Shown: piece after piece, positions 4,268 to 36,916 of the stretch
Layout: every line of letters starts with the position of its first letter
Numbering within the stretch: the first letter of the stretch is position 1
Assembly: GCA_020536535.1 (NCBI GenBank)
Contig: JAHLWZ010000550.1
Span: 1-36,973 of the forward strand
Direction of reading: 5' to 3'
Length of the DNA stretch: 36,973 nucleotides
From: Pelomyxa schiedti
Taxonomy: Eukaryota > Protista > Evosea
Made by a program: the position numbers and the translations under genes
The notes under the pieces: model-generated
What the model saw: only the letters and a program-made list of their open reading frames with translations
Database searches by the model: none
What the model was told of the DNA's origin: nothing

Positions 4268-6235
4268 GTATTGTGGTAGTACTGAGTTAGCGGTTACCTT
4301 TTGACTGATTCTTTCCGAAACAGCGCCTCTTCTCCGAGCACCATCACTTGGATTTTACCGTACTGATCGGAAAAAAGACAACAAATTGTACAGCAGGGTG
4401 CTGAGGAAGTGGGTTACGGATTGTGGGTTGGATGGTTCGTCGCGGAAGACCTGGTTATTGTGTTGGGATCTCGTTCGTGTTACGTGTCACCACGTGCGGT
4501 GCTGTTATGTGATGCCAATGTGGAGTGTAGTATCTCGAACCGTGGTTGACGTGGCACCCTCGGCGTGGTTGCGCGATCTGCGTTATTCGTCAGTGCGTAA
4601 GCGTCGTGGTGCTAAACGAACAAAAAAGAAGGCGGGGAAGGGAAAAAAGCGGGGGAAAAAAAAAACGAAGGTACAGAAAGGTGTGTAGCGGTACCTGTTG
4701 GTTACACCGTCACCATGTGTGCGAAAAGCGATCTCCCGTTCGTGTCGTCGGTCGTGCCGGCACGCGTGTGTTTTGGTTGCCTTGATTTTTTTTTTGTGTC
4801 TGGTTTAGTTTTTTTTGAAGGATCTGGGGTTTTCTGTTTTACCTGCAACTGCAACAATTGCTTCGGTCCGGTGTATAGGCGCAGAGACTGGCTCTAGGAC
4901 TCGCCCATACAGTGATGGGCTTCCACTTCCCCTTCCCTCAGACTATGGGACCAAGGGCCCGAGACTGACACACAGAAGTCTGGATCTGCCGTCGAAATAA
5001 CTTAGAAGTTTCGGCTTGCAGATGGCAGTCGGGCTTGTTGTTACGTGACAACGTCGGGACGATGGCGCAACACCCCGGCGACGGTGACAAGTGAACCCGC
5101 GCGTGTAGTCGTACTCGTACTAGTAGCGGTGCCACACAAGAACGATGCAGCTGGGGGTGAGTTCGTTCCAAAGGTGCACCCCTGACACTGGCCTGCTGGT
5201 AATAAGGCAACCCGTAGTACTGTCACGGCTCGGGCGTGGGCCTCCTCGCCATCGCGTCCATTATAGGATCTCGCAGCTGCAGACCAGCCACAGCGGCACG
5301 CACCTCTTCAGGGAGTGCCTGGGGCCGCTGTGGCGGCTCAGGCACCCCGCTAAGAGTGGGGAAGAAGGTCGTTGTATGTTTGTTTGTGCCGAGTTGAGGC
5401 CACACGTGAGCACCAACAACCAGAGACGTTCTATTGCGATAATTGCTGATGGCGATAGATGCCCAAACACCACTAATCACCACATTTTTTTGTGGGACGA
5501 TACAACACCAAAGCGCGACGCAACATTTGCGATTTTTCGATCAATATTTTTGCCGAAACAGCCTTTTCTGCTAAATAGTAATTTGTGAACGAAGCGACAG
5601 TGGCCGCCGCAGCGCACTGAGATAATGGTGGTGGTTAAGGTGGAGACCCAGTTTGGGAAGGGCCTTCAGACAGTCCTTGGTTGGGCTAATCTCCCAATCC
5701 ACTCAATCTCCTTCCTTCCTTCCTTCCCCTTCCTTCCACCACCCCCTGAGAGATGATGAGAGCGTTCTCGTTGATGACTACTAGAGTATATAACTACAAA
5801 ATAGTGGCTTTGCCCGCAACAAAGAGAGAGGTGCGGTCTCTCCCCTCCGTTCGATTTATTGCGATTTATGTTGTCGAGAACAGAACTAACCACTCCCGAC
5901 CACAACCATTCGCCTTGGTTTTTTTGTTGCACCACAAACAACACTCACAGGCGCGTTGTTGGCCTTCGCAAAACGAAAAACCGATTATTCGATAATCGAA
6001 ACAACCGGTTCAAAGACAACAAAATCCACCAACTGTTTCAACACAGACACTCACACACAATTTGTCAGCCTCCCATGCCAAGTGCTGGCTGCCACCCCTT
6101 GTGTCAGCCCCTATCAAACGATTTGCTGGTGGAACACCCCAGCTGGCTACTGTTTTAGGGGAAGTCTAATGCAAGAACATGTTTGTGTTTTTCGTACGGC
6201 GGTCTGTGGTGTTCAGTCCTTGCTGCTCTGGATCA

Positions 6236-7723
6236 TCAAGAGGATGTTGAAGATGGGGGTGATGAAGGTGATTCATTGTTATTGTTGTAATCGTCTTCGT
6301 GGTTGTTGTTGCTGGTGTTGTGGTGTTGGGTTGCGTTCTTGTTGGGGGCATTTTGGGCAGCACCAACACTGGTTTTGTTGCTGTTGTTGCTGTTGTCAAC
6401 AGAAGAAGCCGGCTTCTTTTGGTTCACTACATTGTCGCACCAACGCAAGACACCCCTGGTCATTTCAGTGCGCATCCAGGCTCTCTTGAGCTCCATGTAC
6501 AGTGTCACAAAGGCCTCCTCCGTTGGTGGGACCGACCCCGCGCCCATGGCTGACATCGGCATCTGTGCCGCTGTGACCTGTTCCTTGGCGTGACAAAGCG
6601 CCACCTCGACCCGGTGCATTGGAATGTCAATCTTCTCGGCGGCGGCCCTCGCCTCCCTGGCCAGCTGCCCCTGCCTCACCAAGTCCACCGCGGCGGGTCT
6701 GGCCCTGCCACAACAAGGGGGGAGCTGCGTGACTGCCATGAACCCCATCATGTTCATCAACTGCGATGTGGAGTCTGTTGCTGTTGGCGGCTGCGGGGGT
6801 GGCGGCGGTGGGGGTGGTGGAGGCGGCGCGGGACTGCGGGAAGGAGTGAGAGCTGGGGCCACCACCGCCACGGCGGAGGTGGAGGAGGAGCACGCTGTAG
6901 GGGTCTGGAGGCGGCGGGGGGCGGCAGGAGGAGGCATAGCGAGACCCTGCTGGGCCACCACGGCAGAGGGCGAGGGGGCATGCACATCCGCCTCCCCATC
7001 CTCAGAAACAACAACAACGGCACCATCATCATGGGCAACTGCCTGTTGGTGTTGTGGTGGTGCCTGTTGATGTTGCTCCAACTGCTGCTGCTGCTGCTTA
7101 TGTGCTGTTGTTGCTGTGACGGACCGGCGTCGTTTGTGTGCTGGTGCTTGTGCAGACTCGCGGTTAGGGCCTCCCTTGCTGTTGCGGTTGTTGTTGTTGT
7201 TTGTGGTGGTGGTAGTGTTGCTGCTGCTTGTGCTGTTGGTGTTGGTTGTGGCGGATGTGGTTGCGGATGTGAATGTGGATGTGGTCTGGGGCACCGCGAT
7301 GCGGTCCGAGTTGGCATCTACCCAGCGCTTATCGGGCGCGACGCTGCGGTACTCCCTGCCACCCAAGTCACCGTCGACAAGAAGCAACACAGGGACGCCT
7401 GCCTGGGCGCCGGCGTCGCGCGGGTTGGCGCACTCGACGATGAACGAGGCGCTGGGGTCGGTCAGCGTCGGGTGGAAGCAGGTCAGTCCAACACTGCGTG
7501 ATTATGGGATGGGGGTGAGAGGAAGGAGGAGGAGGCAACACAAACAACACAGCACGAAGGAAACATACACATTGGCCAGACGAGATCGGCGGACTGCAGC
7601 CTCGACGTCCTCTGGTCTTGTGCCAACCGCAACTTTGCCGCTGACGTTCTTGTACAGGAGGCATTTGTTGAGGTTAGAGGCCGCCAAGTTGGCTGCGGGG
7701 AAGTGGTGCTGTGGTCCGTTCAT
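6236..7723 (-). CDS. Uncharacterised protein, orphan family member A (N-terminal RRM-like domain, T/N/Q/P low-complexity linker, C-terminal helical domain)
   Basis: ATG at 7723 (MNGPQHHFPAAN..). Phase-2 intron 7494-7568 (GTATGT..CGCAG) joins exon 1 in frame to the 384-aa ORF ending at 6236. Similar to the two other family members. Confidence 0.75.
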
Positions 7724-7971
7724 TTTTTCTTGAGAGTCGTGTTCGTCTCCGGTTAACTTGTTATTAACGAGAAAGTGCTTCGTCATCATCAGATTCTCAG
7801 TGATGAAAAGCGAACCAAATTGGAATTTTTCCTCGGAAATTGGATTACCGAAACGCCTTGGAAACCAGAGCTTATTCTGGTTTTTTTTCCTTGAGTTGGT
7901 GAAAACGGCAGTGTGTACAAGTGGTGATTGTTGTGAGGGATGGTTTGCCTGGTTGTGTGTGACCTGTGCGT

Positions 7972-9299
7972 TCAGGGATGAAGGCTCCCCTTTTCGCCCC
8001 CTGCTCTGGTGATCGTGGTGCTGCTTATGGTGCACTCCCTGAGTTTGGCACATTCCTCGTCCTCGGGAACTTCTGGGATTGAGATGCCATGAGCATGCAT
8101 CACTGCCTCGAAGCTGTTCAGAACCTCGCGAAGGGTCCTTGATTCCAGCTGGGAATTCTCCAACGCAATGCGGATGTTTGTTCCCAAACACTTCTGGAAG
8201 CACTGTACAACGCTCTCATCTGGCATCCAGCCACAGTGTAGACCAGAGACGTAACCAGCCAACTGTGCTGCAACTGTCCAATCCTCGGCAAGCTCACGTG
8301 CTGTGATAGACACCCTGCTATACGTGGCCCTTACTACATCTCTTATGGCTGACATCATTTCCGCTTTGTTTGATTTCTCCCTCGCTGATTCCTGTTGACG
8401 TTGCTGCGTCATCCCCGATTCCACACAGGCGGCACCACCATCACCACCATGAGGCTGTGCTTCTTCATCACAAGATGCACCATCTTGAGAGAGGAGGGAT
8501 CCACAAGCACCAGACCCAGAGAAGCTGTTGCTGGGGGGACTATTGCAGGCACTGTCACAACCAGATGATTCTTCAGTGGCGGGATAATCGGCACCGCAGT
8601 CCTGCAATATGCCCTCGATTTCGCAACCGAGACCCCTGAGTTTCCTGATGAGCCTGCTGAATGAACGTGGCTGCTGCTGCTGTTGTTGTTGTTGCTGCTG
8701 TTGGTGCTGTGAGGGTGGTGGTGGTTGTTGCTGAGGGAGGGCCGGCGGAATCGGAGCCATGGCGGCTTGGTTCAGGAGGTATTGAGTGCCCCTCGGAACG
8801 AACGGCTGATGGCTCCCGACCCAATCAGCAGTGAGGAGGTACGCCCGCCTGCATCCCTTGATTGGCCCCACCTCCAACGCCAGGTCGGCCTCGCCGCGGC
8901 TGTTGTACTCGGCAACCACGCTGTATTCATTCTCGCCATACATAGGCAGATACAGGTTGAGTCCAATGCTATTGTGGTTGGTTGGTTGGGTGTGAACGAA
9001 GAGGGTGCGGTACTGTGAACAACACACACACACACACACACAGCACTCGCGGATCACACGAAAAGAAAGAACGACGACGAGGACTGTCCTCCCACAATTG
9101 CGTACGGCGGGAATGAACCCACGAGGAGCGCATCTTGCACCTGTCGGACGGACACCGAGTCGCCCCTGAACCCTTCGTACACGACGCAACTCTCCATGTT
9201 GCTGTCGTGCACGTTGACCGGGACGAAGGCAAATGGAGTCACCTCCTGGTCCTCGCCCACGTGGCGGTTGTTGCGGTTGTTCCTGTTGCTGGTGGCCAT
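7972..9299 (-). CDS. Uncharacterised protein, orphan family member B (RRM-like domain, polyQ/Ser linker, helical C-terminal domain)
   Basis: ATG at 9299 (MATSNRNN..). Phase-2 intron 8969-9105 (GTACGC..AATAG, contains a TG microsatellite) gives ..GSFPP-IGLNLYLP.. in frame with ORF 7972-9189. SVVAEYNSRGEADLAL resembles RNP1 plus helix 2 of an RRM. Confidence 0.75.
9022..9042. repeat. (CA)n microsatellite inside the intron of family member B
   Basis: acacacacacacacacacaca. Confidence 0.9.
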
Positions 9300-9481
9300 T
9301 TTTATGTTGTATGTGGTCAAGTTGAGGAAAGATCTGAGTTCGATTGATGCTCTGAGGAGAGGGGCAGTTCGCACTCAGTGAGGTTATCTATGCCCATAAT
9401 GCCAGGAGAGCAAAACCTGGGAAAAAAAACCTTTTTTTTGCTTGGTTCCTGCATAGGGTTGTTAGCTGCTGTTGCTGGCAG

Positions 9482-12400
9482 TCACAGAGTTGTGGTGGTG
9501 CTTGTTGTTGCTGGAGGAGAGGGGGAGGAGGAACACTGCTGCTGCACTGTTGTGGCTCTTCGAAGGAACAACTTGAGGTCATTGAGGGGGTCCTTGCCTG
9601 TGGCTTCTGGCGGCGCGGTCACCTGGCCCAGCTTCTCCCGCTCTTCCAGCTTGTGAAGGGCACACTGAGGGCGCGTACCCAGGTGCGAAACAACTCCATT
9701 GTTCTCGGTGACCGAGGCCTTCTTGAAAAACTCGGCAGCGGCATTCCTGACATCGGTGGAGTAACTGGAATCAAGAAGTGCAAGAACCGGGTCAGGTCCA
9801 TCTGATGGCCAAAGGTGCAGCCTTGAATGGAATGAATGCGGGGAAAAAGAAAGGGAAACCAACCTTGCTTTGGTGTCAACCTCCATGATGTGCGTCAGCA
9901 TGCGGAGCAGGCGAGCTGTGTTTTCTTCATGTTGTGTATTCAAGAAAAGTGTTCTGGAAGGAGAGAGGAATGTCATGTGAGTGAGCGAGGGGGGTCATCG
10001 AGTTTAAAGACATACGGCAGTATCACTGATGACACGAGTACGAGGCTCAGAGTCCGATCACTTTCCGTGATTCCACCCGCGGTGGTAATGCCTTCAAGGG
10101 TGTCGAGGCAGGTGTTGAAAATTTCGCCGCTGGCTGTTCCAATTGCCTGAAACAACAGAAAGGAAAGATAAGAAGGGATTGGCGGCAAAGGAAATCCAAA
10201 ACCTGGGCCATGAATTCAATGACGGCTGCAGTTGCCGTTTCGCTGCCTTTGCACAGGCACCGGACTATATGTTTAACATCATCAGCACTGATTTTTGGTC
10301 CGAGACTTGACAGAAGATTCACGAGGAACTGCGTTTTTTATTTTGTTTGTGTTTAAATTTTTTGAGGAGAGAATTGGTCTCACCTTCTTCTTTACAACCG
10401 CAGTTGGATGTGACATCAAAGCTTCAAGTGCAAAAAGATATACGAAATCACCCTGAGGGTCGCTGCCCAATTGGCCGCTCATGGAAAATAACATCTGAAC
10501 AGTTTGCCTTCCGCAAAAGATCCGCCTCTGTGTAAATTGTTTCAGCGGGTTGAGTTCAACAACAACAAAAAAAAAAAAAGCAAAAACCTACTCCTTTTTC
10601 GTCCAGCCCATCAGCTGCAAAGTCGAAGATGAATTTGAAGTACTGCGAACACCATGATTGTTTACCCTGTTTCACGAGCTCTTTTACTTGAGCGGGATGC
10701 ACTAAAGTAAGCACAAGATCGATTAAATGGAGGGTTCCAAGGCCCATCTCCTTTTGTTGGGGAAGAGTTAAAACAAAAAGGAATGCATGGGCATCAAGGA
10801 AGACGCACCGGATTTGACGTATTCAAACAATTTGGTGTCTCTGACTTCGCCGCGGCAGTCACAAGGAATTTGACAAATCCCATGTAAGCAGCATCAGTGT
10901 TATTGCTCAATTGTAGAGTATATGCGTTGTCTTCTTCTATTCTAGAGTTGATGGTCTCCGGTATCTTCACGCCAGAGTTTGAAACCTGCGGTTGCTGAAG
11001 CTCCTCTTCCTGTGTGCTGCCACACTTTTCATAGAACAGGATGTATGCAGTATCTCTAGAGAAGGGAAAAAAAGGATGTGTTATAATTACTGTTCACAAG
11101 GAAGAAGAAAGGGTAACACACCTTGGAATGAACATTCCGTTTGTGGTTTCTTTCCATCCTCCAAAGCATGTTTCTGATAGTTCCTGAAAAAAATCGTTAA
11201 AATAATGGAAGCCCACAGTCACATTACATACTGCAATATTGAATGGCTTCACGGTGTTGTCATTAAACAGTAGCCAATTTCCCTGTGATGAATCTTGTTC
11301 TCGAATAATGCTGTAGTAGTGACCTTCATTTGGCGTGTCACCACTGTGCACTATCACCCCAACTAGGCGATACAACACAGCACCAGGTACATGGATTCCC
11401 ACTGGACTCGTGGTTGTAGATGCTTCTTCTTCAGCAACAGCAGCTGCTGTGCTATGCGCTGCCTTTGTATCCCATAATCCTCGGAGGCAGAGTGAGTCCT
11501 TGGTGGTGAATGGAGCCATGTCAAGTTCCATCGGGACTTTGAACTCGTCGTGGAGCTTCATCTGCTTTTTGCCTGAGCTTGTAAACCACTCACAGTGCAG
11601 GATGAGAGTGGCAGGGAACTCCTCCAATGAGTAGCCTTTGAGTGCGTCGACCTTGTTGAAAGTGAAGGTGCGTAGTTTGTTAATTCAATTCAAAACAACA
11701 ATGAAGTAGACACGAACCAGTTTATTGCAGGTATTGCATTGGTACCCAGTACCACCTTCAACTTCATTTTCGTTCACAGAGATATTGGCAAGGCTAAAGT
11801 ACTTGGAGAGTGACACCGCGGTAGTGGCCATGTCACGCACTTCCAGTTGAAGTGCGTAGAAGGGCCAATGTTGATCCGAGGTTTTCTCGCACACTTTGCA
11901 TTTGATACGTTGGCACTGCTTTCCTCCAAAACACTCGTGGAGTATATCCTACCAATGACAGTCAGCAAAAGTGAAGTTGGTTGTATAATATTGTATGTTT
12001 TTTGTTTGCATGTTTGTATGTGATGTATGTAAGTGGATTAATTAAAGAAGTGATTATCCACCGAATTATTCGCAGCTTTTATCTCAGCAGTTAGACCATC
12101 ACGAAGTTGAGTGAAGAATTCATCAACATCCATCTGCCTAGACAAGTCTATGGGAATCCCACTTTTCCTGAGGGCATTGCAGAGCCCTCTTGGATCAATG
12201 CACTCCCTCCCACTTTTCATAAGTCCACCAAAGAGGAGTTGCACCTGGTAGAGTATGGAATCATCCAGTGCCTCTTTCGACGAAGGAGGCAGCTTAGACT
12301 CAAGAATGCTGTACTTTTTGTTTTTGTTTTTGTTTTTACGTGCGTGAGAGGTGAGAGTAGACCACTGGGAGGTGGATGGCACTTCATTACTAACCTGCGT

Positions 12401-13622
12401 CTGAATGGAACATTCATGTATAGCTGTTGCACCAATGCATTTATGTAGCAAGTGGCTCCGAGGTTACAAAGCCCCACATAGGTGTTAGAAGAAGACTTCA
12501 ACTTCAGTGGCGAATTCTCCCATATAGGCCTGTGTACAGGACTGTTTTGTTCAATCACAAGATCAATAACTTTCCACAGGCTGGTCGGTCTATCGCCACA
12601 CAAAAGGCCCACCAGGGAAAGTGCAGCCCGGCGTAGTGTAGGTGTCTGATGAGTAAATAAATAAATGATTGAAAGATAAAGTTCTGGTACGTTTCCAGAT
12701 GAGAGATCATCACCAATATTTGATTTCCTTGATACACAGTATTTCTTCCAAACTTCATCAATCAAGCGGGACCTTTTTGATCAGACAGACTGTTGTTAAT
12801 ACAATAATAGTTCCTTAGTATCTATAGCTGTGAAGGGAAACAGGGTGTGTTTATTCTATTCTATATATCTACGAGGGTCTGGGCTGGTTTTTACCGGACA
12901 AGTTCTGCATTGTCAGTCTCGCCGATTTGGTTAAGGTTATGGAGTTCTGCGCGACACAAACTCATGATGGAATTTGAACACGCCCCCTCTCCCACACCCA
13001 TTCCCTTTCCTTCTGCGTACCCCAATAGCTGCCGCTCAACCTCGCCGATGATAGTGGGTGTTTTCTTTGCCCACTTGGGTGGCGCTGGGAGCACCGCTAC
13101 GCTGCCCCCCCTCGCCGCGGCCGGCATGCTGCCGGTGCCCCCCCTGGCAGCCGCTGGTTCCCCCCCCCTGGGGTGTTTTTGTGCCGTTTGCCAGCAGCTG
13201 CTGCAGCTGCGATTGCTGTGCCGCTTCAGTGGTAGCACCACCGCCCCCTCCGGATCACCCACGTCGCCCTCGCCCTCCTGCTCCTGGTCCGGACCCCCAT
13301 CGCGGTGCGCCTCGTGCCCACGGCCCTCCCCCCCCACGCCGCTCACTGCAGCGTCCTCTTCGTCCTCGTCCTCGTCATCTTGGTCCACCACGTGGCCCGG
13401 CGCCCGCTCCCGCTCCCGCGCCAGTGCCCGTGCCTCCCGGTAGTGGTGCTCCGCCCTCGGGGGTGGTGGGGCCGTTGCGCCACCCTCGCCCCTGCCTTCC
13501 CTTGTCGGTGCCGCCCCCATCCCCCCATGAGGCCCATGCACGCTGCTGCTGTTGCCGGCCGTGCTGGCGCCCCCCTCGGCGTGCTGCGGGAACCTAACGG
13601 GCACGAACCGGTTGTAGGGCAT
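9482..13622 (-). CDS. Ubiquitin carboxyl-terminal hydrolase (USP, peptidase C19; USP9/24/34-like), multi-exon
   Basis: Cys box YVGLCNLGATCYINALVQQLY, QMDVDEFF, Zn-finger YQCNTC, His box YRLVGVIVHSGDTPNEGHYYSII..WLLFNDNTV. GC-rich first exon (MPYNRF.., 13622) joined by intron 12773-12894 to give ..ELVRSRLIDEVW... Ends are approximate. Confidence 0.92.
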
Positions 13623-13691
13623 TGTGCGTGGCCGCACTTTGTGAGTGTGAAGATAAAAAAAAAAAAAAACATACATCAAGCCCCCTACGAT

Positions 13692-13713
13692 GACGACGAC
13701 GACGACGACGACT
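13692..13713. repeat. (GAC)n trinucleotide repeat in the short divergent intergenic region between the USP gene and family member C
   Basis: gacgacgacgacgacgacgact, preceded by a poly-A run. Confidence 0.85.
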
Positions 13714-13746
13714 ACAGTGTCCAACGATACAGTGGTCCTCAACAGC

Positions 13747-14826
13747 ATGAACCCATTTGACGAGGCGGATATCACGGGCAGGGCGAAGTTCTGCCGTGTG
13801 TTCTCGGGTCTCGGCCTAAACGTCCCAACAGACGTGTTCGAAGCCGTGGTCACCTCCACGTTCGTTGCATCTGTGTGAGCCGTTTTATTCTTCTTCTTTC
13901 TGGTTTCCTTCTCTACCCTTTTCATTCTCTTTGTAATCGTAACCATCGCAGTGTTGGTGTGTCGCTGTACACACCTGTTGCGGCTGGTACTGGGCTCTCT
14001 GGTTTCATCTTGGAACTGATGGATGAGCCACCAGGCTCCCTGGCAATCACAATCAATGGCAAAACCTACGTTGGCTCGAAGCTGAGCATGGAATGGCTCC
14101 AGAATAACCGCAAATGGTTTTTTGTACCCCAGAGCCCCCCACACAATGGGACCGAACCCGACGGCTGTGGATCCATCCTCTCCGAAGCGCCGTCTGAGCC
14201 ACCAATGCCGAGGCCGAGGAAGCCCATCAACCTCCTTCCTGTCAGTGACTCTGTGCTCCCCAACAACGATGACGATTGTACCTCTGTTTCACGCCCAAGA
14301 GGATCATCTGTGCAGAATCTCTTGCAGCAACTTCACAACGCCCTTCTCATGGAAGCACGCTGCAACGCATCAGCGTTCCAGGTGTGCTACACCCCACCAA
14401 ACCAACCCACCCACCCTTAGTCCTTATCTAAATAACCAACCATTGAAGGAACCAACATCAGAGACCACACAGGGGGGCCCAGAGGCACCGCCCCCCTCGA
14501 GCCGCGAGGCTGAACTCAACGCGGCAATGAGCACCTCCAGCAGCACCGCGTTCAAGGCAATGGACATTCTCGCCAAGGCAGTTGCAGAGGGCACAGAAGC
14601 TGCCCAGGTCATGATGTCCACGTGGGAGCGCCAGCAGCGCCGTGGGGAGAAGGACGTTTCCGGCGACTTCAACCGAGCACGCAAGGCGTGGGCGGCTGCC
14701 TTGGCTGCATTCCACAGTGCCTGCCCTCTCATGAATGCAGTCATGCGCCGATTCCTTCTGGCTGACAACGAACCCAAGTATCCCGACAAGGACCACAAGG
14801 CCACCGATGGTGATGGCGGTGAATGA
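13747..14826 (+). CDS. Uncharacterised protein, orphan family member C
   Basis: ATG at 13747 (MNPFDEADITGRAKFCRVFSG..). Phase-2 intron 13875-13951 (GTGAGC..CGCAG) and phase-0 intron 14382-14448 link three ORF segments in frame. Stop TGA at 14824-14826. Similar to members A and B. Confidence 0.75.
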
Positions 14827-20380: not shown

Positions 20381-20797
20381 CTCCGCCCCCACCACGCGTA
20401 CACACGTATTTTTTTATTTGTTTTCTTTTTGATCTTCGATGTTTCGGCTCTTTGACAAGCCAGGGGATCTACAATCTGCCAATCAACAAAAAGGACTTTG
20501 TTTTCTTTTTCACGTGAAAGAAGCCAAGGTGAACCAGGCACGAGGCTCCAAAAAATACTACCCTGGATTTAGATCCAGGGGAAAGCGTGAACGGAGTTGG
20601 GTGTCAGCAATCTTGACCCATCGCTATATCGCTCATTAGGACAAGAGTGTCACCCCGGACGCTGGATGGATACTGTTTGTATCGTGCCACCGGTCGAGGA
20701 ACACCCGGCCTATGTCCCAGAATATTGTGGGATCTACAATCACAATCTACACAAACCTGCAGTTGCGTTTCGGTTCAATATCGGCACCGGTACGCAA

Positions 20798-23201
20798 ATG
20801 AAGCGTAGAGGAGCGTCCAAGCTACATGTAACCGCAAGCCCTGTTGTTCCGTCTACAACTCGAGCCGCCAAGGCCAAACCTGTCGCGGTCAAGCCCGAGC
20901 AGCAGCCACCCCACGAGGACGACGAGGACGACGAGGACGAGGACGAGGACGAGGCACCCGACGACGACAATGACGAAGAAGCAGAGAGGGAAACCGGGGA
21001 CCCGGTCGTAGACCCAGACAGCGACGGGAAGGAGGAGGCCGACAGCGACGAAGAGGAGGAGGACGAGGAGGAAGAGGAAGAGGAGCAGGAGCAACAGGAA
21101 GAAGATGACGAGGAGGAGGAGGAGGAGGAGGAGGAGGAGGAGGAAGGGGAAGACGACGACGGGCAGGGAGTGTACGCGAGCATGGTGCCAGTCCGCGACG
21201 AGGACGACGCGAGGGCGGGCAGGGCCAGCGCGAGTGACGACGAGGAGGAGGGAGAGGGGGAGGCGGGGGGGGAGGAGGCGGCGGACGGTGGGGAGCTGGA
21301 GGTGGTCGTGGGGCGGGAGGGGGCCGGGGTCACCACTGCCGACGCGGCGGCAGCGCGGGCGAGGGAGGAGGAGATGCGGGCGCGGCGGGCGGTGCTGAGC
21401 CGCATGGGGGAGTCCTTCGTGAGCGAGCCCCACGTGCTCCTCGTGGCCGGCACCTACGAGCACCAGCTGTTCGGATTCGCGGTTTCGCCCGATCTGCTGC
21501 AGTCTACCCAGCCTCAGTCCGATTCTGATACCAATTCTGGCTCTAGTACAACCAGTTCCACGAGTACTGGAAATAGTGCCGCCGCTTCTACTACGACTTC
21601 GAAAAGAGGCAGTGGAGTTGTTGTGAAGACTGAGGGGGATAGTGTTGTGGTGAAGACTGAGCCTGGAGATAAGATTGACCCGGGAAAATCTGTGAACAAA
21701 GGTGGCAAGAGTGCTGCCGCCAAGTCACCAAGTGCTGAACTCTCCCCTTCGAGTAAGCTTTTTGACTTGGGCCTGGAACGAGCTGGTTGTGAAGCTATTG
21801 TTCCGGCCTTCGCTTTCGTTGCTCATCTCGGCTGCGTTAAAGCACTAGCTTGTTCCAAGTCGGCATATGTCACTGCCTTGACCGAGAAAGCACCCGCTCC
21901 CAGTAAATGGATCGAGAGGTCGTTGTTGGTCAGCTCTGGAAATGATGAAACAATCAACGTGTATGACTTGAACAGGAGGGTACAAACTTCGACTCTTTAC
22001 CTGCACTCTGGTATTTCATTCTCTTCTACTTGGTTTGGGGAATGCCAGAAGCTCACACAAATATTCAAGGAGGGGTAACTTGCTTGGAATGGCATAAGGT
22101 CCATGTTTTAAGTGCCTCTACTGATGGATCCATCTGCGTGTGGAGAACCTCTGATTGGGAATGCATGAAGACCATCAAGGCACACACGTAAGAGTCTTGC
22201 TGGATATCTTCCCACTACTTAGTGCTTATTTAGGGGCGGAGTAACGGCTTTGAGTATACATCCATCAGGGAAACTGGCCCTATCAGTTGGATCAGATAGA
22301 AAATTAAAACTTTGGGATCTCCTACTGGGAGTCAAGATACATGCCTCTAACCTCAGTTTTGGTATGCCACAAACCATTTTGTGCAACTAACTTAGATTCC
22401 TTCAGACGCTGAGTTACTCCAATGGGCCCCAAAGGGGGAGAATTTTATCATGTCATACAAATTACACACGGCAATTTATAACATGGTAATATTGGTGTGC
22501 CTTTCTTGCCGGTCTTATCGGTTTTTTAGGATCTCAAAGTGGTCAAATTACTGCAGTACGAGTCACCTGGGCGTGCCTGCGCATTCTTCAGCGAAAAAGT
22601 AACTCAAATTAATTCTCTGCTCTCCCATATATATATAATGCTTTCTGTAGGAACTGATATTGGGTCATGAAAACGGAACTCTGAGTGTTTGGGACATCAC
22701 AACCGGTGAGAAAACCCGTACATTTAGCAGGACACCAGCCAGCCGGTATGTTTCACTCTCACATTATTCCCCTCACCACGCTCACTGGTACTCAGTATCA
22801 AAGGCATTGCCCTCATATCCGCGGACCACATTGCCACGGCTTCCTCTGATGGAACCATTGCCATATGGAATGTGAAGGAATCATCGGAAGTACTGAGCTT
22901 CCCCACACGGGCCCGGCTCACATGCCTCATAGCTGCGCAAGTCACAGCCAGTAGCACAAAGAGGGAGCGAGTGCAGGCCGAAGGCAAGCGACTGGCCACA
23001 GTGAAGAAGCTGAGCCAAAAATTCGACCAGTTGGACAAGAAAGGACATGTATCAAAGACTGATGCTGTTTGGATAAGAAAAAGCAAACGACTCCTGAAAC
23101 AGAATCCTAACACTGCTCCGGCTGACAAAAGGCCACCACCAACACAGCAACAACAGCAACCAAGTGCAAGTAAGAAGCCAAGAGTAAACAAGAAGCCATA
23201 G
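20798..23201 (+). CDS. PAK1IP1: PAK1IP1/Mak11-like WD40 60S ribosome biogenesis factor with a long acidic N-terminal extension; multi-exon
   Basis: LLVAGTYEHQLFGF, FVAHLGCVKALA, LVSSGNDETINVYDL, LSASTDGSICVW, SIHPSGKLALSVGSDRKLKLWDL, TRARLTCL, and a basic C-terminus. Confidence 0.88.
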
Positions 23202-23286: not shown

Positions 23287-26200
23287 TCAGAAGTCAACAG
23301 AGATATCCGCGGTTGATGAAGGTGTTGTGGTTGTTGCTGTTGCCGTTGCTGTTGTTGCGGCTGTGTGCGGTTGTTGCGGGGATGACTGCGGGGCAAAGAT
23401 GACAGAATCATCCCCATTCTGGTCCGTGATTCTTTGTTGGTTGTGTGTAGTTGTGGATGCGGCGCTGTGTGTTCTTGTTGCTGGAAGTGTGGGTGTTAGT
23501 TGTTGTTGTGTATTGGCACCGCTTCCTCCTTGTCTTTGTGCCAGATAGTTTTGCAATCCAAGGTTGACTTGCGGTTTCTGTGAAGCGAGGAGCGTTGGTG
23601 ATAGCGAATTTGTTGCTGTAGTGGTCGGTGTGTTAGGGAAGGTGGTTGTGGCAGGGGTTGTTGTTGGAGCCGGTATGGCCGCGGCTGTAGCCATCGGTGT
23701 TGGTGAGGCTGATGAGTGTGTTGGAGTTACAGTCCGCTGCGGAGTGGGAAGCAGCCCTTGTGGGAGTGGTGGGGAGGGATTGGCAACAGGGTGTGCTGTT
23801 TGGGATGGGGTGGTGTTGAACGGTAGGGACCGCTCTGGTGGTTGGGGTTGCGAAACTGCTTGTGGGGTATTGCCCACAAGTTGTTGTGGCTGGGGATCCC
23901 GCTGGTTAGTTTGCGGCTGGGGTTGGAGGTGGCGTTGCAATTGCAACGGTGCTTGAACGCGGGTTTGCATCATTTGTTGTTGTTGGGGAGTTAGTTGTGG
24001 TTGGGAAAACGTCTGAGGTGGAGATTGAGTTGGTTGTGGTGTGTGATGAGGTTGTGGAGGACTTGTTGTGGGATAGAGCTGTGTCTGTGCCTGGGATGGT
24101 CTTTGGTCTGGAGCTTGAGTTGGAATTTGATTTCGTGTTGGTGTTGAGCTTGGTGGTGCTAGGGTAGGTGTCGGTTGGGTTGGAGCTGGAGTAGGAGTTG
24201 GACTGAGTGGCTGTGCTAACGGCGGAACATTTGTTGGAGTGGTGATTGGTGTTAGTGCAGGCACTTGAACCTGAGTTGGTTGTTGGGCTTGCGGGCGGAA
24301 ATTTTGCAGAGGTTGCAATGTTGTTGGAACACTGGACAGAGGTCTTCGCGCTCCTATTTGCGATTGCATCTGATTATTCAATGTAGGTTGTACTTGTGGT
24401 GTAGGCTGCAATTGCACCTGTGGCCGGTTGGTTTGGCAAGTAATGACGACTCGATTTGGTTACATACTTGACTTGTAAGCTGGAAACTCATTTGCAGTTG
24501 CTGTTGCAGAGATAACTGCGGATTCTGAGTGCCTGGTGGCTGGGCAGCACCTCTAGGGTTCGCCAGATTTGGGGAAATCAACTACACGTAGTGAGTCACC
24601 ATATATAAAAGACTGTTCCAAACTTGATTTGCATCAGTCGCACTCCCTGGGTTCATCTCTAAACCTGTTGTTGGATCGTTCATTCCTAACGAAGAGTGAG
24701 TTTATGTAGACGGACTACGAACCAACCAAAAGTGTTTGGGCGCAGAGGTGCAGCTGTTACGGCAGCACGAATGGAATCTAAGAGACTTGAATATGTAGAT
24801 GGTGGGTTTGGGAATATTCAAACCGGCAATTGGCGCTCTTGCTTGTGGGACAAGAGAACTCACTCTAACAAGACTTAAAATGAATGGCATAAAAGATGTT
24901 GTACCCATCAGTGGCATCAGGGTCGTGTGTCTCAATTAAAATTGTTGGCGTTGTTTCACTACAAGTTGTCTGTGGCTAGTTGGATTTCATGAGAATAAAG
25001 GTCAGGAATACCTGATCAGGCGCAAACTTTTTAAAAGTGCATTTTGTTGATTCCCAAAAAGCCCTGGACAGCTCCGTCGAATGAGTTATGCATTCAATAT
25101 TGCTGGTCCACCTTAAAAAAAGTCAGGGAAATTGGTGGTGTGCCTGCATACGTTGATTTTGGATTGGCAAATGGAACCTCTTGGGTCTTGGATTGTTAAA
25201 GGAACTCAAAGTTTGTAAAAAAACACACAGGAAAATATCCAGAAAAAGGAGCCCATGATGGCTTTCTTGCAATATTCCACTGTGCCAGTTTCTCTGTAGC
25301 AACTCCAATAGCAGATTTATCAGTTTCAGTTTCTAATAATAGTTTGAGAGGAGCGAATTTTCCGGATGCACATACGTGCAAGGTGGGTGGCTATCTGGTT
25401 AAGAGAAAGAACTCCTTGAGTAACCATCAGGAAAAGAGGTTTCCCGTCAAATTGTGAATTTTGTTGTGGCGCAGTGGATATGGCTGCACTAATGCTAGGC
25501 TTTGTGTGCTTAACAGGTAAGTTCGGGTTATCTTGGGTGTACTTAAGAGTGCTTGCTGCAACAAATTTTACCTTTAAAAAAGGTCACATTCAACTTGAAA
25601 AGAAAGGGAAATTTTACTTTTGGACAAAGGAAAGGATCTTGGGAATGAATTCTCGCGAGTGCGGAAAGTTCAATGTGCTAAACTAATCTTAGGGAGAGAA
25701 CTTCTTCTGCACAGCACATACAGGATACGTTCCTGTTCTACTGAAGCCAACATGCTTCCAGGACCGATTAGGTGTGAACGCTGTGGAGTGTGTATAGATT
25801 TGTACAGGTCCTCCAGATGGGTACACGGCGAATATATCTTGGTCTTTGTTACAAAATACACTTTGAAAGGAAAACCTCACGTGAAGTCCCATGTGTAGAA
25901 CTAGCAATGAACCAGCGGGAATCGTCATTGAATGCCATATCTTGAACTACTGCAGCACTGACTCCACGATGAAGGGTGTAACTATACGTGTCAGGTTATA
26001 CCTCCAAACAGAATTGGAACAACATGCGCTGTGGTTTCTCTTGAGTAGATGTAACTCTATACACATGGAAAGAACGGCATTCAACGTCAGCCGTAACAAG
26101 CTTTGGTTTTTAAGAAAAGGTCAATGTGAGACAAAGCAAGAAAGATGAGAAAGGAAGCGAACCAACGTTCCACTGGGATCCCAGTTTAGTGAAGACAGAG

Positions 26201-31558: not shown

Positions 31559-33521
31559 ATGCGGCGGTTGCTGTTGTGGTTGGCGATTGTGGGATTGGCC
31601 AGTAGTAGCAGTGACAGTTACTATAGTAATAGTGACAGTGACAGTGATGGACGTCATGCAATGATGCCTGGGTTCCCCATGCACGTGTCAGTGCCTGTCA
31701 TTTCAGTGGTAGTCTATCACTAACTTATTCATCTACAACCTATGTTGTTGTTGTTGTTATTATAATTGCTGGATTTGTTGTCATTGCCAATGTGTCTCGT
31801 TTAACTCTTCAGTGCGAAAAAGAAATCATAACTACACGTAAAATAACGCTTTAAACGTTAAAGNNNNNNNNNNNNNNNNNNNNNNNNNNNNNNNNNNNNN
31901 NNNNNNNNNNNNNNNNNNNNNNNNNNNNNNNNNNNNNNNNNNNNNNNNNNNNNNNNNNNNNNNTGTTGTTGTTGTTGTTATTATAATTGCTGGATTTGTT
32001 GTCATTGCCAATGTGTCTCGTTTAACTCTTCAGTGCGAAAAAGAAATCATAACTACACGTAAAATAACGCTTTAAACGTTAAAGCTCCAAACTGACCTTG
32101 TTTGTGTTGTTGTGTCTGATGGATTCCTTTTGGAAAGCTCATGGTGACATCTTTGATAATATGTGGCATTGTGGTTATTATGCATAGTGTCAACTACGTG
32201 CACCCAATCACGCAGAGGTTCCTTATCAGAATAGTACTAGTTGTGCCCGTTTTTTCTATTCTCAGCTTCTTGACGTGAGGATCCTTTTCTTAAAAGACAA
32301 GTTGAAGGAATAACCTTAATATAAGCCTTTAGGTTCATTTTGTGGGAGTTTTCCCCCTTCTTCAACGTGGCGCAGGATCTATATGAGGCATACGCTCTTT
32401 TATGCTTGTGCGTTTCAGAAATCTCTTTATTTGTTGACGTTTTGTTCAGCTTCTCTCTGCTTGTGGCATACTGCGGGGATGTCAAGTGCCTATCCACTTG
32501 CTTGGCCGATAAACTAGCTCCTACGTTTAAGTGCTGTTGTTGCTTTACATTGACAACGCCAACACCCCCTCGTTTGGTGCGATTCGCAAAGATTTCCATC
32601 TTTCAGTTTATGATAATGTATCTCTCTCCTTCTACTGTCGTGCTCTAATTTCTGCTAGAAAACCCCTTATTAGTGTAGCTTCTGTGGTTTTCATGTTCGT
32701 GTTTCCACTCCGGAAGTTGGAAGTCGCAATGCGACTGGCGGCACTGGCCTCTCTGATTTTTGCCATGTGGACCCTGTTAATGTTTTTTAGAGTGATATCA
32801 AAGTGCCTGAGTGGACTCAACACACTTCAGGTTACTTCTTCCCAATTCCAAAGTGGCCCTGACTTTTCTGCAGATATTCCTGTGGCTTAAAGGCCTCATA
32901 TTTCTACTTGTTGTTCAAGAGGCAGTTGTTGACATGGCATTCCAGCGAGGCTTGATCATGGGTAACAGCTTATTTGCAGCCGGTGCCCGTGCCCGCCGGT
33001 TCGCCGCGTTCCTGTGCCTGATTGAATGCCTTGCATTCAGCATAGCCGCACCGATTGTGTTCTCTTACAAGATGTACAAGGAGAAACGCCTACGCGGTGA
33101 TGTTGCTCCCTCTGTTCTCCGAGGCCGGGGGCTGACAGCCCGGGTTCTGATATTGGAATGCCTCAAGGATGTATCCCTACTCTGGATTCTGAGCGGCGGA
33201 GGGTGCCCCCATCCCAAGCCACTAGACACACTCGGCGGCACAGCCAACACCAGTGCCCTCATCGAAGCCGGCCTATCCACGTCCGCATCAGAATCATCCG
33301 GAAATGGTGGAATCGGCGGAATATCCATATCAGTGATTCCCGGCTCCCCACCACCACAACATATCAAAAACAATGCCACACCTGGTGTGGTGGAATCAAT
33401 TCCATCAGAGCATGCACCATCACCACCCCCTACATATTCCAATTCCCATTCCGAACCAACAACTACAACAAAAGCAACGAGCACTACAACCACAACTACT
33501 AGTACCGATTCTAACCTCTAA
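31559..33521 (+). CDS. TMEM184/organic solute transporter alpha (Solute_trans_a) family protein; multi-exon, intron 1 spans the gap
   Basis: NYVHPITQRFLIRIVLVVPVFSILSFL, FFNVAQDLYEAYAL, AKISIFQFM, FLWLKGLIFLLVVQ, FLCLIECLAFSIA. Intron 31709-32137 restores the TM1 sequence VSVPVISV-LMVTSLIICGIVVIMH. S/T/P-rich tail. Confidence 0.85.
31864..31963. other. Scaffold gap (100 N) with overlapping flanks
   Basis: 31743-31863 is repeated at 31964-32084, so the two contigs overlap and the gap is probably spurious. Confidence 0.95.
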
Positions 33522-33604: not shown

Positions 33605-36591
33605 TCAACGGAAACTGCCATCAAAACCTTCAAAGCCGGTAGCAAGTAGTAGTGGGTAGTATGTTTTCTTCTCTACTTTGCTGCACCAATTCCATGAACT
33701 GGTAAGCCGGCCATCAACACAGGAACCTTGGGTATGGATATAAGTAATTTGTTGTAATATTAGAGGGTGCAAAGAGTGGATGAGTTGGTACCTCCATCAC
33801 TTCCACTGCCGTCAAAGCCGCTTCTGAAGAAGTCTCTCAGAATGAACTTCCGGGCTACGTCGGGACCACCAGCAAGTTGTATGAGCTTATTTGTATGAGG
33901 ATTGGCACTGAGAAGGTCAAGCCGTTCTACTACTCTGGCAATTGGGCCCAGGATACGAGGGACTTGTGTGTACTTATCTTGCAAGAGTTAATAAATACTG
34001 GGCAAGCAAGGTGGACGATACCGATGAAAAACAGCGCATTTGGAACATCCCGATCACCAAGGTGAACAACAGAAAGTCCAACCCATCCAGAAACTCTTGA
34101 TTGAACCTACTTGCCAATAAGTCTTGAGTGAGAATCGCAGAACTCACCCTTCCAAGAATGGAGGACATGGCCCTACTGATATTTGGTGCTGGTTGCACTC
34201 TGTTCATTCCCTGGCCAGTGTTACAAAGTCTGTACCCTGCAGGAGACAACAAATCCTCATCCGCTAGAATCCACAGTTTGAACATATTGTGCTGTACCTA
34301 CTTGGAGTAAGGTTTTAATAAGATTCTGGACTGACTACCTCTCTCCATAGCATCATCGATTGCTTGACAAATCTATACTGGTCGGAGTGCGAATGGCTAA
34401 GGTGTGAGCCTTCCATGCCACACTGAATTTGTAGATCTTCAGTTGCCTCACTTGGAGAGTGTGCAGGAAAGTATTTCTCAAGGTAGTGGATCATGCGGTC
34501 AACAGGATCACGGTTAGTAACAAGGTAAGCATTAGCATCAGCCAAAGAATCAAGTGCCAGTTTCAGGTCGTCAACAGTGAGGCTGGGGTAATACAATGTT
34601 AACAGTTATAGCTACCACTACAACAAACCTGGCAGAACAGTGTGTGGCACATAAAGTGTTAACAGCTTCTGTTTTCATTGCTGCCTCGGCGTCTAAGACT
34701 TCTCTTGGCTTGGGAACTCCATCCAGGCCAATCTGAAAAATATTGGTATGCAGAGAGTTGCAGGGTATGTTACTTGGCTGATGGAATGAGTAGCTCTTCT
34801 TAATAACTCCAAGTTGTCAATTGAGGTGCCGTTAACGGACACTGAACAGTTACCTAACACTCCCAATGCGCCATGCTGTTGCAGGAATGCGTGCACAGTG
34901 CGAATAGGTTTAACAACAGAGAAATTAAGATTGTGCGGGCAGACAGCGTCCTGGAGGAGATGCATCAATTTTCCATAGGTAGTTCGCATTTTGTCAGGGT
35001 TGAGAATTTTAAAGCGGCGGCCGATTTCGAAAATCTGAAAAAGATGTAGGCACACAGAGATAATGAAAGTTTATATACATCTTGGAAAAAATCAGCATTT
35101 TCCTTGAAGGCCTTACGAACAACATTGCGGGCTGCTGTATAGTCACCTGCCAAGTAAAGACCACAAGCCAGAGCCAGAACTTCCATTAGTTGCTGGGAGA
35201 TAATCTTATCTTTCTCCCAGCCTTGGGCTCTCCATCCATAGTCGTCACCTGCAACCTAGGTGGATGAAATGTGTGTTTTAAGGACAAAAGGAGGAGGGGT
35301 TGCATACGTCAACGTGGTCTGTGTACTCACTTATATCAAGAACACCTAGAGATTTTTAATTTTGTAAATTGGTACAAGTATCTTGGTGCACACCCTCAAG
35401 CATTCCAAGTAATCGTCTTTCCTTCTCAACAAGCCTTACTGGCACCCATTTGCTCAGTTCCACCATATCAACATTTGTTTCTGTCTAGGTGCTGTAAATT
35501 TTGGTTCGCAGACAAATTGGCTTGTTACCATGTCAACATGCTTGGGGAAACGTGGGCTGTTCTTTTTTACTGTATGTGGCTTGATCTTTGAAGCAAGAGA
35601 CCAAGGTGTCAACCAGGACGGCTTGTTGTCAGAATCACTCTCCGTTTCACCACTTTCGTCACCTTCCTCATTTTCGTCATCTTTAACAGCACGAGTTGCC
35701 TCAGGAGCAGGGGGCGGTAATGGAGCAGTGGGAGGAGTAGAAGAGACCTCAGTGGGTGTTCCTTCTGATTGCCTTGATGGCGAGTCCGCATCCTGGTACG
35801 CTGAAACGAGTTGTGTAATTACTGCAGGATTGGAGCCGGTTACAGTGGATGTTGCTGGGGTAGTCTCTGTTGTTGCAGTTGTGGAGGCCGCGGAAGTCGG
35901 GGTTGTGGTGTTAGATGGCTGGTCAGTATTCAGCTTTGGTTTCTTCTGACGCTGGGGGCGTTGTTGCTCCTGCTCTGCCTGCGGGAAAATTAACAGTTAA
36001 TAGATGCAAGTGAAAGCTCACAAGAGCAGCATTAAGGTTGTGGACGAAATGTTCAGTGGTGCCCTCGATGAACTTCGGGTCAATAGCATGCAAAGACAAG
36101 TCTACACCTGAAAGTGGGCGACGTGTATGTGTTGCCCTGTTTCCCTTTCGATGTTGGAACCTAAAGCATAATCCTACAAGAAAAAAAAAAAAAAAAAGCG
36201 AAACGAGTGAGAAACGCATAGAGACTACACGAGCCCTTAGGGGGCAACAACAAAAAAAAAAAAGGAAAAAAAACAGAAAAAAACCCAAAAGAAGAACCAA
36301 AAAGGTAAAGGCAGAGGTTAGATGCGCACCGCAGAACTTGTCGCCGCCGCACTGGTCACACACCACAGCCGCCGGCACGTCCTCGCACTCCACGCAATAC
36401 TCGACAACCGGCGCCGACCCATCAACCACCATCATCGACGTTCCCCTCGTGGTCCCGGTGCCGTTATCGGCCCCGGTGCTGGTGCTGGTGCTGGTGCTTG
36501 TACTTGTACTTGTACTACTCGCCGTCGTAGTACTACTGCTACCAGTCGCCGTTGGCGACAAAGTGGTCTCACCACCGTTCTGGGAGGACAT
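33605..36591 (-). CDS. UPF0652/DUF2009 family protein with an N-terminal B-box-type zinc finger; multi-exon
   Basis: [147 protein letters not shown]-stop. Confidence 0.9.
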
Positions 36592-36916
36592 GTGCGTGCT
36601 GTGATCAATATCGTCGGTTGCGGGTTGGTTTGTCGGTGTCGCAGGTGGCGGCTTGTTGTTGTTGCTGCCCAATTAATTAATTAATGGAACTGTGTGTTCC
36701 CAAGTAGGAAGAAGTGATGGAGTATCGCGACGAGTTATTAAACACGAAGAGAAACTTCTTCACTAGCCACCAGTTAACCTCTGACAAGAGCTGTCTAAAC
36801 ACCAATGTTGTTTGCATAAATGCTGTGGAAGATCTAGTGATTGGTCTCTAAAGAAAGAGGTTCGGGGGGGCCATGTCACACAGTCACACACACTAGTGTG
36901 GTGCCATGGCAGTAGT

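Follow-up and report, generated by a model that had tools for sequence, protein, structure and literature searches.

A contig from the anaerobic amoeba Pelomyxa schiedti (JAHLWZ010000550.1, assembly GCA_020536535.1), analysed over positions 1 to 36,973 (36,973 nucleotides, hereafter the window), carries three neighbouring genes, designated A, B and C. The explanation that best accounts for the data, and which we consider probable as a whole, is that they are old local duplicates, so far known from P. schiedti only, whose N-terminal domain is a non-canonical relative of the RNA-recognition motif (RRM). Comparison of the three sequences gives good support to their paralogy. For the RRM-like fold we claim plausibility, not proof, and we do not file the family as a member of the RRM family.

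A divergent N-terminal domain common to three neighbouring genes

The N-terminal domain common to A, B and C comprises ∼105 residues coded by two exons, with pairwise identities of 21-29%; it corresponds roughly to residues 5-118 of A, 22-128 of B and 20-124 of C. Smith-Waterman alignment of the N-terminal ∼120 residues against composition-preserving shuffles gave p values of ∼1e-3 for the pair A-C, 8e-3 for A-B and 2e-2 for B-C. Leave-one-out profile hidden Markov models (HMMs) provided a stronger test. With a model built from B and C, A reached 19.6 bits (E 8.5e-4 in a set of 20,000 proteins), and with one built from A and C, B reached 11.4 bits (E 0.24); none of 5000 shuffles scored as high in either case. 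A model of A and B gave C 4.8 bits, a score reached by 14 of 5000 shuffles. Since the space searched in this test of homology is really a handful of neighbouring genes, these scores, together with the immediate neighbourhood of the genes, lead us to regard homology of the N-terminal domains as established. An earlier reading of this DNA (the original prediction) had described A, B and C as ancient, strongly diverged paralogues that share an intron at one position and in one phase, and shuffles, leave-one-out models and alignments all bear this description out.

The tails speak less clearly for common descent. No significant similarity was detected between the C-terminal parts, leave-one-out models giving them -0.0 to 1.1 bits, scores reached by 556-1503 of 5000 shuffles; in Smith-Waterman shuffles the pair B-C is the only one to reach p 0.014. 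Homology of the tails across A, B and C is thus not demonstrated. Their common architecture is real: in each gene the N-terminal domain is followed by a low-complexity linker and a helix-rich tail.

Gene models and an intron shared by A, B and C

The gene models, with coordinates in the window, are as follows.

Gene A, 6236-7723, minus strand: spliced model of 470 aa joining 7723..7569 and 7493..6236
Gene A exon 1, 7569..7723, minus strand: ATG at 7723; 51 codons and 2 bases, encoding the first half of the N-terminal domain; recovered by the exon-1 profile in the search of the genome
Gene A intron, 7494..7568, minus strand: 75 nt, GTATGT..CAG, phase 2; contains an in-frame stop if kept
Gene A exon 2, 6236..7493, minus strand: 418 codons and stop; second half of the domain, linker and helical C-terminal part
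Gene B (Pelo_6942), 7972-9299, minus strand: protein of 396 aa
Gene B exon 1, 9106..9299, minus strand: defined by sequence and match to the NCBI protein
Gene B intron, 8969..9105, minus strand: 137 nt, GTACGC..TAG, phase 2; holds a (GT)n microsatellite
Gene B exon 2, 7972..8968, minus strand: 331 codons and stop
Gene C (Pelo_6944), 13690-14826, plus strand: protein of 330 aa
Gene C exon 1, 13690..13874, plus strand: defined by sequence and match to the NCBI protein
Gene C intron 1, 13875..13951, plus strand: 77 nt, GTGAGC..CAG, phase 2
Gene C exon 2, 13952..14381, plus strand: second half of the domain and linker
Gene C intron 2, 14382..14448, plus strand: 67 nt, GT..AAG, phase 0; annotated form
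Gene C exon 3, 14449..14826, plus strand: helical C-terminal part

Genes in P. schiedti were predicted with Augustus, followed by PASA/EVM refinement on single-cell transcriptomes (PMC8887013). The resulting NCBI "hypothetical protein" models Pelo_6942 (B) and Pelo_6944 (C) are identical in length and sequence to the spliced models that we derived from the DNA. In a word-indexed protein search, exon 2 of gene B retrieved a single 100%-identical protein, Pelo_6942, and the C-terminal exon of gene C retrieved Pelo_6944. The protein of gene A was absent from both databases searched, by word index and by exhaustive profile, although its own exon-2 residues were part of the profile query; the word-indexed search with gene A returned no match, being swamped by low-complexity candidates. 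Exon 2 of this gene encodes a long, low-complexity linker rich in T, N, Q and P. Absence from both databases makes it most likely that gene A is unannotated. An opposite-strand open frame of 303 aa (6590-7501) overlaps it and could have misled gene prediction.

Re-reading the DNA and its translations confirmed every peptide and all three intron coordinates given in the original prediction. In each gene a GT-AG intron of phase 2 interrupts the codon directly before a [VI]G pair, and retention of the intron would lead to an early stop in A, B and C alike. The three split codons fall in one and the same alignment column, both in unforced local alignments and in a MAFFT alignment. Two introns gained independently would be expected to hit the same nucleotide of a ∼330-nt domain about once in 300 cases, and three far more rarely still. 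With independent gain that improbable, the shared position provides independent support for common ancestry of the three genes.

The introns also look typical of their surroundings. In the neighbouring ubiquitin-hydrolase gene, seven introns of 42-113 nt are confirmed by spliced RNA contigs; all are GT..AG, and two of the seven end in AAG. By comparison with these RNA-confirmed introns, similar in length and boundaries, neither the A, B and C introns nor the AAG acceptor of intron 2 of gene C is unusual. That second intron of C has no counterpart in A or B, and an alternative CAG acceptor at 14472 is likewise in frame.

Expression was assessed on positions 6100-12099 with three RNA runs from single cells and a DNA run, all taken from the genome's own study. 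RNA contigs from runs X1 and X3 cover exon 2 and the 3′ untranslated region of gene B (7913-8831), showing that gene B is transcribed. Two results from the three RNA runs count against the picture of three spliced and expressed copies: no RNA contig spans the intron of gene A or of gene B, and none lies on positions 6100-7900, which include gene A, while the adjacent genes are covered. The junctions of B and C are therefore supported by the deposited annotation, and that of A by the logic of its sequence; expression of gene A is likewise something we infer.

Two minor features of gene B were noted. One X1 RNA contig (depth 6) carries an extra G after window position 8532, within the low-complexity linker, that is missing from the X3 RNA contig and from the DNA run; it would shift the frame of gene B, and could reflect an error of assembly, allelic variation or slippage. 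The (GT)n microsatellite of the intron occupies 9013-9052, a repeat passed over in the placement of reads.

A family without detectable relatives

The family had been described as lineage-specific and not assignable to any known family, and searches of the genome itself, of protein databases, of Pfam and of metagenomes all agree with this. Six-frame searches of the 52-Mb genome, run with B by itself and with profiles of the separate exons built from all three genes, found exactly these three loci; no fourth copy was recovered by the one protein query and two exon-wise profiles used. In a word-indexed search of 5.8 billion proteins, B and C matched only themselves. HMMER, run exhaustively over 1.84 billion representative proteins with a profile made of B, C and the exon-2 part of A (exon 1 of A being left out), returned only B, C and one bacterial protein of 2395 aa. 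The latter is a LapA-repeat adhesin in which 35 columns matched, repeated five times, with an hhalign probability of 25%, and we attribute the match to chance. A metagenome contig scan with B alone found no relative, the A/B/C alignment being too diverged to yield patterns for such a scan, and exact-sequence contig look-ups for B and C returned no record. Pfam scans of the exon pieces and of the complete proteins B and C yielded no family at thresholds up to E 10; matches to TFIIA and DUF2802 were dismissed as low-complexity noise. These results support the view that the family, so far known from P. schiedti alone, has no detectable relatives.

Fold of the N-terminal domain

The original prediction had further called the domain RRM-like. 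This part of it stands only partially: the structural neighbours of a model of the C domain and a set of sub-threshold profile matches agree with it, while direct sequence tests do not. AlphaFold, given the three-row alignment, modelled the C domain with a predicted local distance difference test score (pLDDT) of 70.4 and a predicted template modelling score (pTM) of 0.63. A VIA search with this model, which is independent of Foldseek, returned 50 best neighbours that are nearly all RRM, quasi-RRM (qRRM), xRRM or UHM domains, led by qRRM2 of ESRP1 (Z 6.5 over 92 residues) and qRRM1 of Glorund (Z 6.4), and including Pub1, Raver1, the p65 xRRM, the PUF60 UHM and the qRRMs of hnRNP H/F. Foldseek against the PDB found nothing significant with the same model (best E 0.68), its weak top rows being RRMs and geminivirus Rep. 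Shape search of the ESM Atlas with the C model gave template modelling (TM) scores of 0.50-0.55 to RRM proteins; across all fold searches, TM to RRM neighbours ranged from 0.41 to 0.55. At the level of sequence, the A/B/C profile had six sub-threshold matches in the PDB, three of which are RRMs: hnRNP F qRRM1, which came first (E 0.36), TIA-1 and TIAR. All three aligned in register over the whole length of our domain, and hnRNP F did so strand for strand, including the Trp after β4. An RNP2-like Y/F is conserved in A, B and C.

Other results weigh against an RRM or are neutral. Only one of the five AlphaFold models of C is confident, and it shows the segment expected to form helix α2 as a strand; for the B domain, AlphaFold gave an unusable model (pLDDT 43). 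The Z of 6.5 obtained with VIA falls in the range that this method reports for models without a true match. No sequence method was significant for RRM; in Pfam, even a cut-off of E 10 brought up no family of this kind. Against a profile of 14 ordinary RRMs from the same genome, hhalign aligned the A/B/C alignment over 16 columns at β3-α2 only (P 0.03, probability 1.7%), and with the HMM of these Pelomyxa RRMs, 3-29% of shuffles scored as well as A, B and C did (p 0.03-0.29). The residues at RNP1 positions 3 and 5 are S/S/G and I/V/I in A/B/C, and thus not aromatic. Finally, ESM language-model features of B point weakly to ubiquitin-like domains, with scores of 0.89 or less. Three further searches gave no usable lead: in the PDB, the sequence of B alone had two unrelated weak matches and that of C alone none, and ESM Atlas features of the C domain had no usable match. 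Setting the C model and the profile matches against these results, we lean slightly towards an RRM-like but non-canonical domain, of quasi-RRM, xRRM or UHM-like type.

Comparison with known RRM-type domains

The quasi-RRMs of hnRNP F/H, Glorund and ESRP1 (e.g., PDB 2db1, 2hgl, 5uzg, 7vki) offer the closest comparison. The C model has its best structural neighbours here (80-92 aligned residues, Z 6.5 and 6.4), and hnRNP F qRRM1 is the best sub-threshold profile match, its alignment including an acidic residue-Trp-Val sequence after the last strand. Like the quasi-RRMs, the domain is devoid of the classical RNP1 aromatic residues. However, the similarity is not significant (E 0.36), and the quasi-RRM loop-1 motif R-G-L-P-[WFY] is missing from A and B, with only G-L left in C. 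The domain organization differs as well, since A, B and C have a single N-terminal domain followed by a disordered linker and helices, where quasi-RRMs occur in tandem. No binding to G-tracts is known for A, B or C. Among the Pelomyxa RRM loci that we retrieved, there was no qRRM-type gene.

Classical RRMs (RRM_1, PF00076) resemble the domain in the predicted order of strands and helices, in an RNP2-like first strand and in a β3 that ends hydrophobic-hydrophobic-E, followed in B by a helix of the E-A-D-L-A-L type. Local matches of the Pelomyxa RRM profile lie where an RRM would have them, at β1 in A and α2-β4 in C. In contrast to classical RRMs, RNP1 positions 3 and 5 hold S/G and I/V instead of aromatics. 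At least 87 ordinary RRM matches in the genome were easily found by the same methods, and the A/B/C family was not among them.

The xRRM and UHM domains (the C-terminal RRM of La, Tetrahymena p65, PUF60, Tat-SF1) are also among the neighbours of the C model, at Z 5.0-5.7. A helix after the last strand is typical of xRRMs, and in A, B and C this region carries the invariant Trp. However, we found no UHM R-x-F motif and no xRRM signature residues in the three genes, and the likeness derives from one model of moderate confidence.

Alternative explanations

Could the resemblance between A, B and C have arisen by chance, in three unrelated low-complexity genes each with an intron near a similar short motif? 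Pairwise phmmer E-values are not significant at proteome scale (2.7-83), identities are as low as reported above, and introns are dense in this genome, at 7.43 per gene (PMC8887013). Yet dividing the leave-one-out E-values by 20,000 gives per-sequence p values of ∼4e-8 for A and 1e-5 for B, with ∼3e-3 for C from the shuffles, and the relevant search space is a few neighbouring genes. An identical intron column and phase in all three, a like architecture and the adjacency of the genes also run against coincidence, which we consider very improbable. A different doubt concerns gene A, which might be a decaying or silent copy, either a pseudogene or an open frame persisting in GC-rich repeat DNA, leaving a functional family of two members. 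The lack of RNA contigs on it in the three single-cell transcriptomes, the absence of any protein with its exon 2 from NCBI-derived databases, and a low-complexity region of 55-59% G+C in which several reading frames are open over long stretches would all fit this possibility. However, gene A retains an uninterrupted spliced frame of 470 codons that has a start codon and good splice sites; of the three domains, its own scores highest against a profile of the remaining pair (19.6 bits); and Logan contigs from small single-cell libraries miss weakly expressed genes. We consider a silent gene A possible but unlikely, and hold gene A to be probably an unannotated gene.

The remaining alternatives accept true paralogy and bear on the fold. 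The domain could be a ubiquitin-like β-grasp module or a fold peculiar to the lineage. The ESM-feature neighbours of B, namely TDP-43_N, GRHL1_C, PB1, GT-1, CIDE-N, the Par3 N-terminal domain and DWNN, are all ubiquitin-like; the order of elements (a short strand, a first long strand, a helix, then strands) is compatible with a β-grasp too; every sequence test against RRM fails; and a gene of the UCH family is located between B and C, which may point to a connection. However, the feature scores all lie below 0.9, where they serve as leads only, those for ubiquitin-like membership being 0.80-0.87 for B alone, with no Pfam match, and the C domain has no usable match of this kind. The only usable three-dimensional model has RRM and ferredoxin-like neighbours, no ubiquitin-like chain was present among the 50 neighbours listed in each of two PDB fold searches with it, and the sub-threshold PDB profile matches are RRMs rather than ubiquitin-like proteins. 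A β-grasp or a fold of its own is thus an unlikely reading of the domain, though one to be taken seriously. Distinctly unlikely, in our estimate, is that the domain is not a diverged RRM but a new small α/β family that originated in the Pelomyxa lineage and diversified there; if true, its three copies, evolving fast enough to lie near the limit of mutual detection, would offer a rare instance in which the recent birth of a domain can be traced, along with a dated intron.

Proposed origin and function

Under the favoured explanation of old local duplicates with an RRM-like domain, A, B and C would derive from a single gene. A and B form a tandem pair; C has the opposite orientation and is located beyond the ubiquitin-hydrolase gene. 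The phase-2 intron conserved in the three copies would separate the first helix of the N-terminal domain from the next strand. The domain itself would most likely adopt a non-canonical RRM-like (ferredoxin-like) fold, with a predicted RNP2-like strand of the form hydrophobic-[YF]-x-[NG]-hydrophobic, a putative β3 ending hydrophobic-hydrophobic-E and an invariant Trp just after the presumed last strand. Lacking the RNP1 aromatics, it appears closer to a quasi-RRM, xRRM or UHM than to a classical RRM.

The long, presumably disordered linker, rich in Q, P, T, N and S, may tether this domain to the C-terminal helices. The N-terminal domain could serve as a binding module, either for RNA, contacted via its loops, or for a peptide partner; if it is quasi-RRM-like, the classical sheet surface would not be used for RNA binding. 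We propose nucleic-acid binding, which the original prediction had put forward as a possibility, very tentatively and consider it rather doubtful.

Three otherwise uninformative "hypothetical" genes of the only Pelomyxa genome thereby gain a family relationship, and A is recognised as probably unannotated. The analysis also illustrates that a conserved intron position can reveal homology missed by six-frame or exon-wise searches. Should a quasi-RRM-like fold without outside relatives be confirmed, the family would exemplify the extent to which RRM-type domains can drift when a protist lineage evolves fast. Failing that, it is one among the many lineage-restricted families of under-sampled eukaryotes, and no long-standing question depends on it. 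We conclude that A, B and C form a modestly interesting lineage-restricted family and not a new kind of system.

Other features of the window

The gene between B and C encodes a ubiquitin carboxyl-terminal hydrolase (Pfam UCH, E 4e-20); it has multiple exons, spans 9482-12800 on the minus strand and is presumably Pelo_6943, judging from the order of locus tags. Between the 5′ part of this gene and the start of gene C, the segment 12847-13690 has a G+C content of 63% and long open frames on both strands, such as one of 417 aa at 12891-14144 (minus strand) with no Pfam match. This segment could hold the first exon of the hydrolase gene, a shared divergent promoter region, or both.

Rfam had no match within the window. 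Two further open frames, at 20597-22078 (plus strand, 493 aa) and 23287-24417 (minus strand, 376 aa), had no Pfam match. Towards the end of the window, positions 32811-33521 carry a fragment of an Ostalpha solute transporter, and 35923-36672 gave a weak B-box match.

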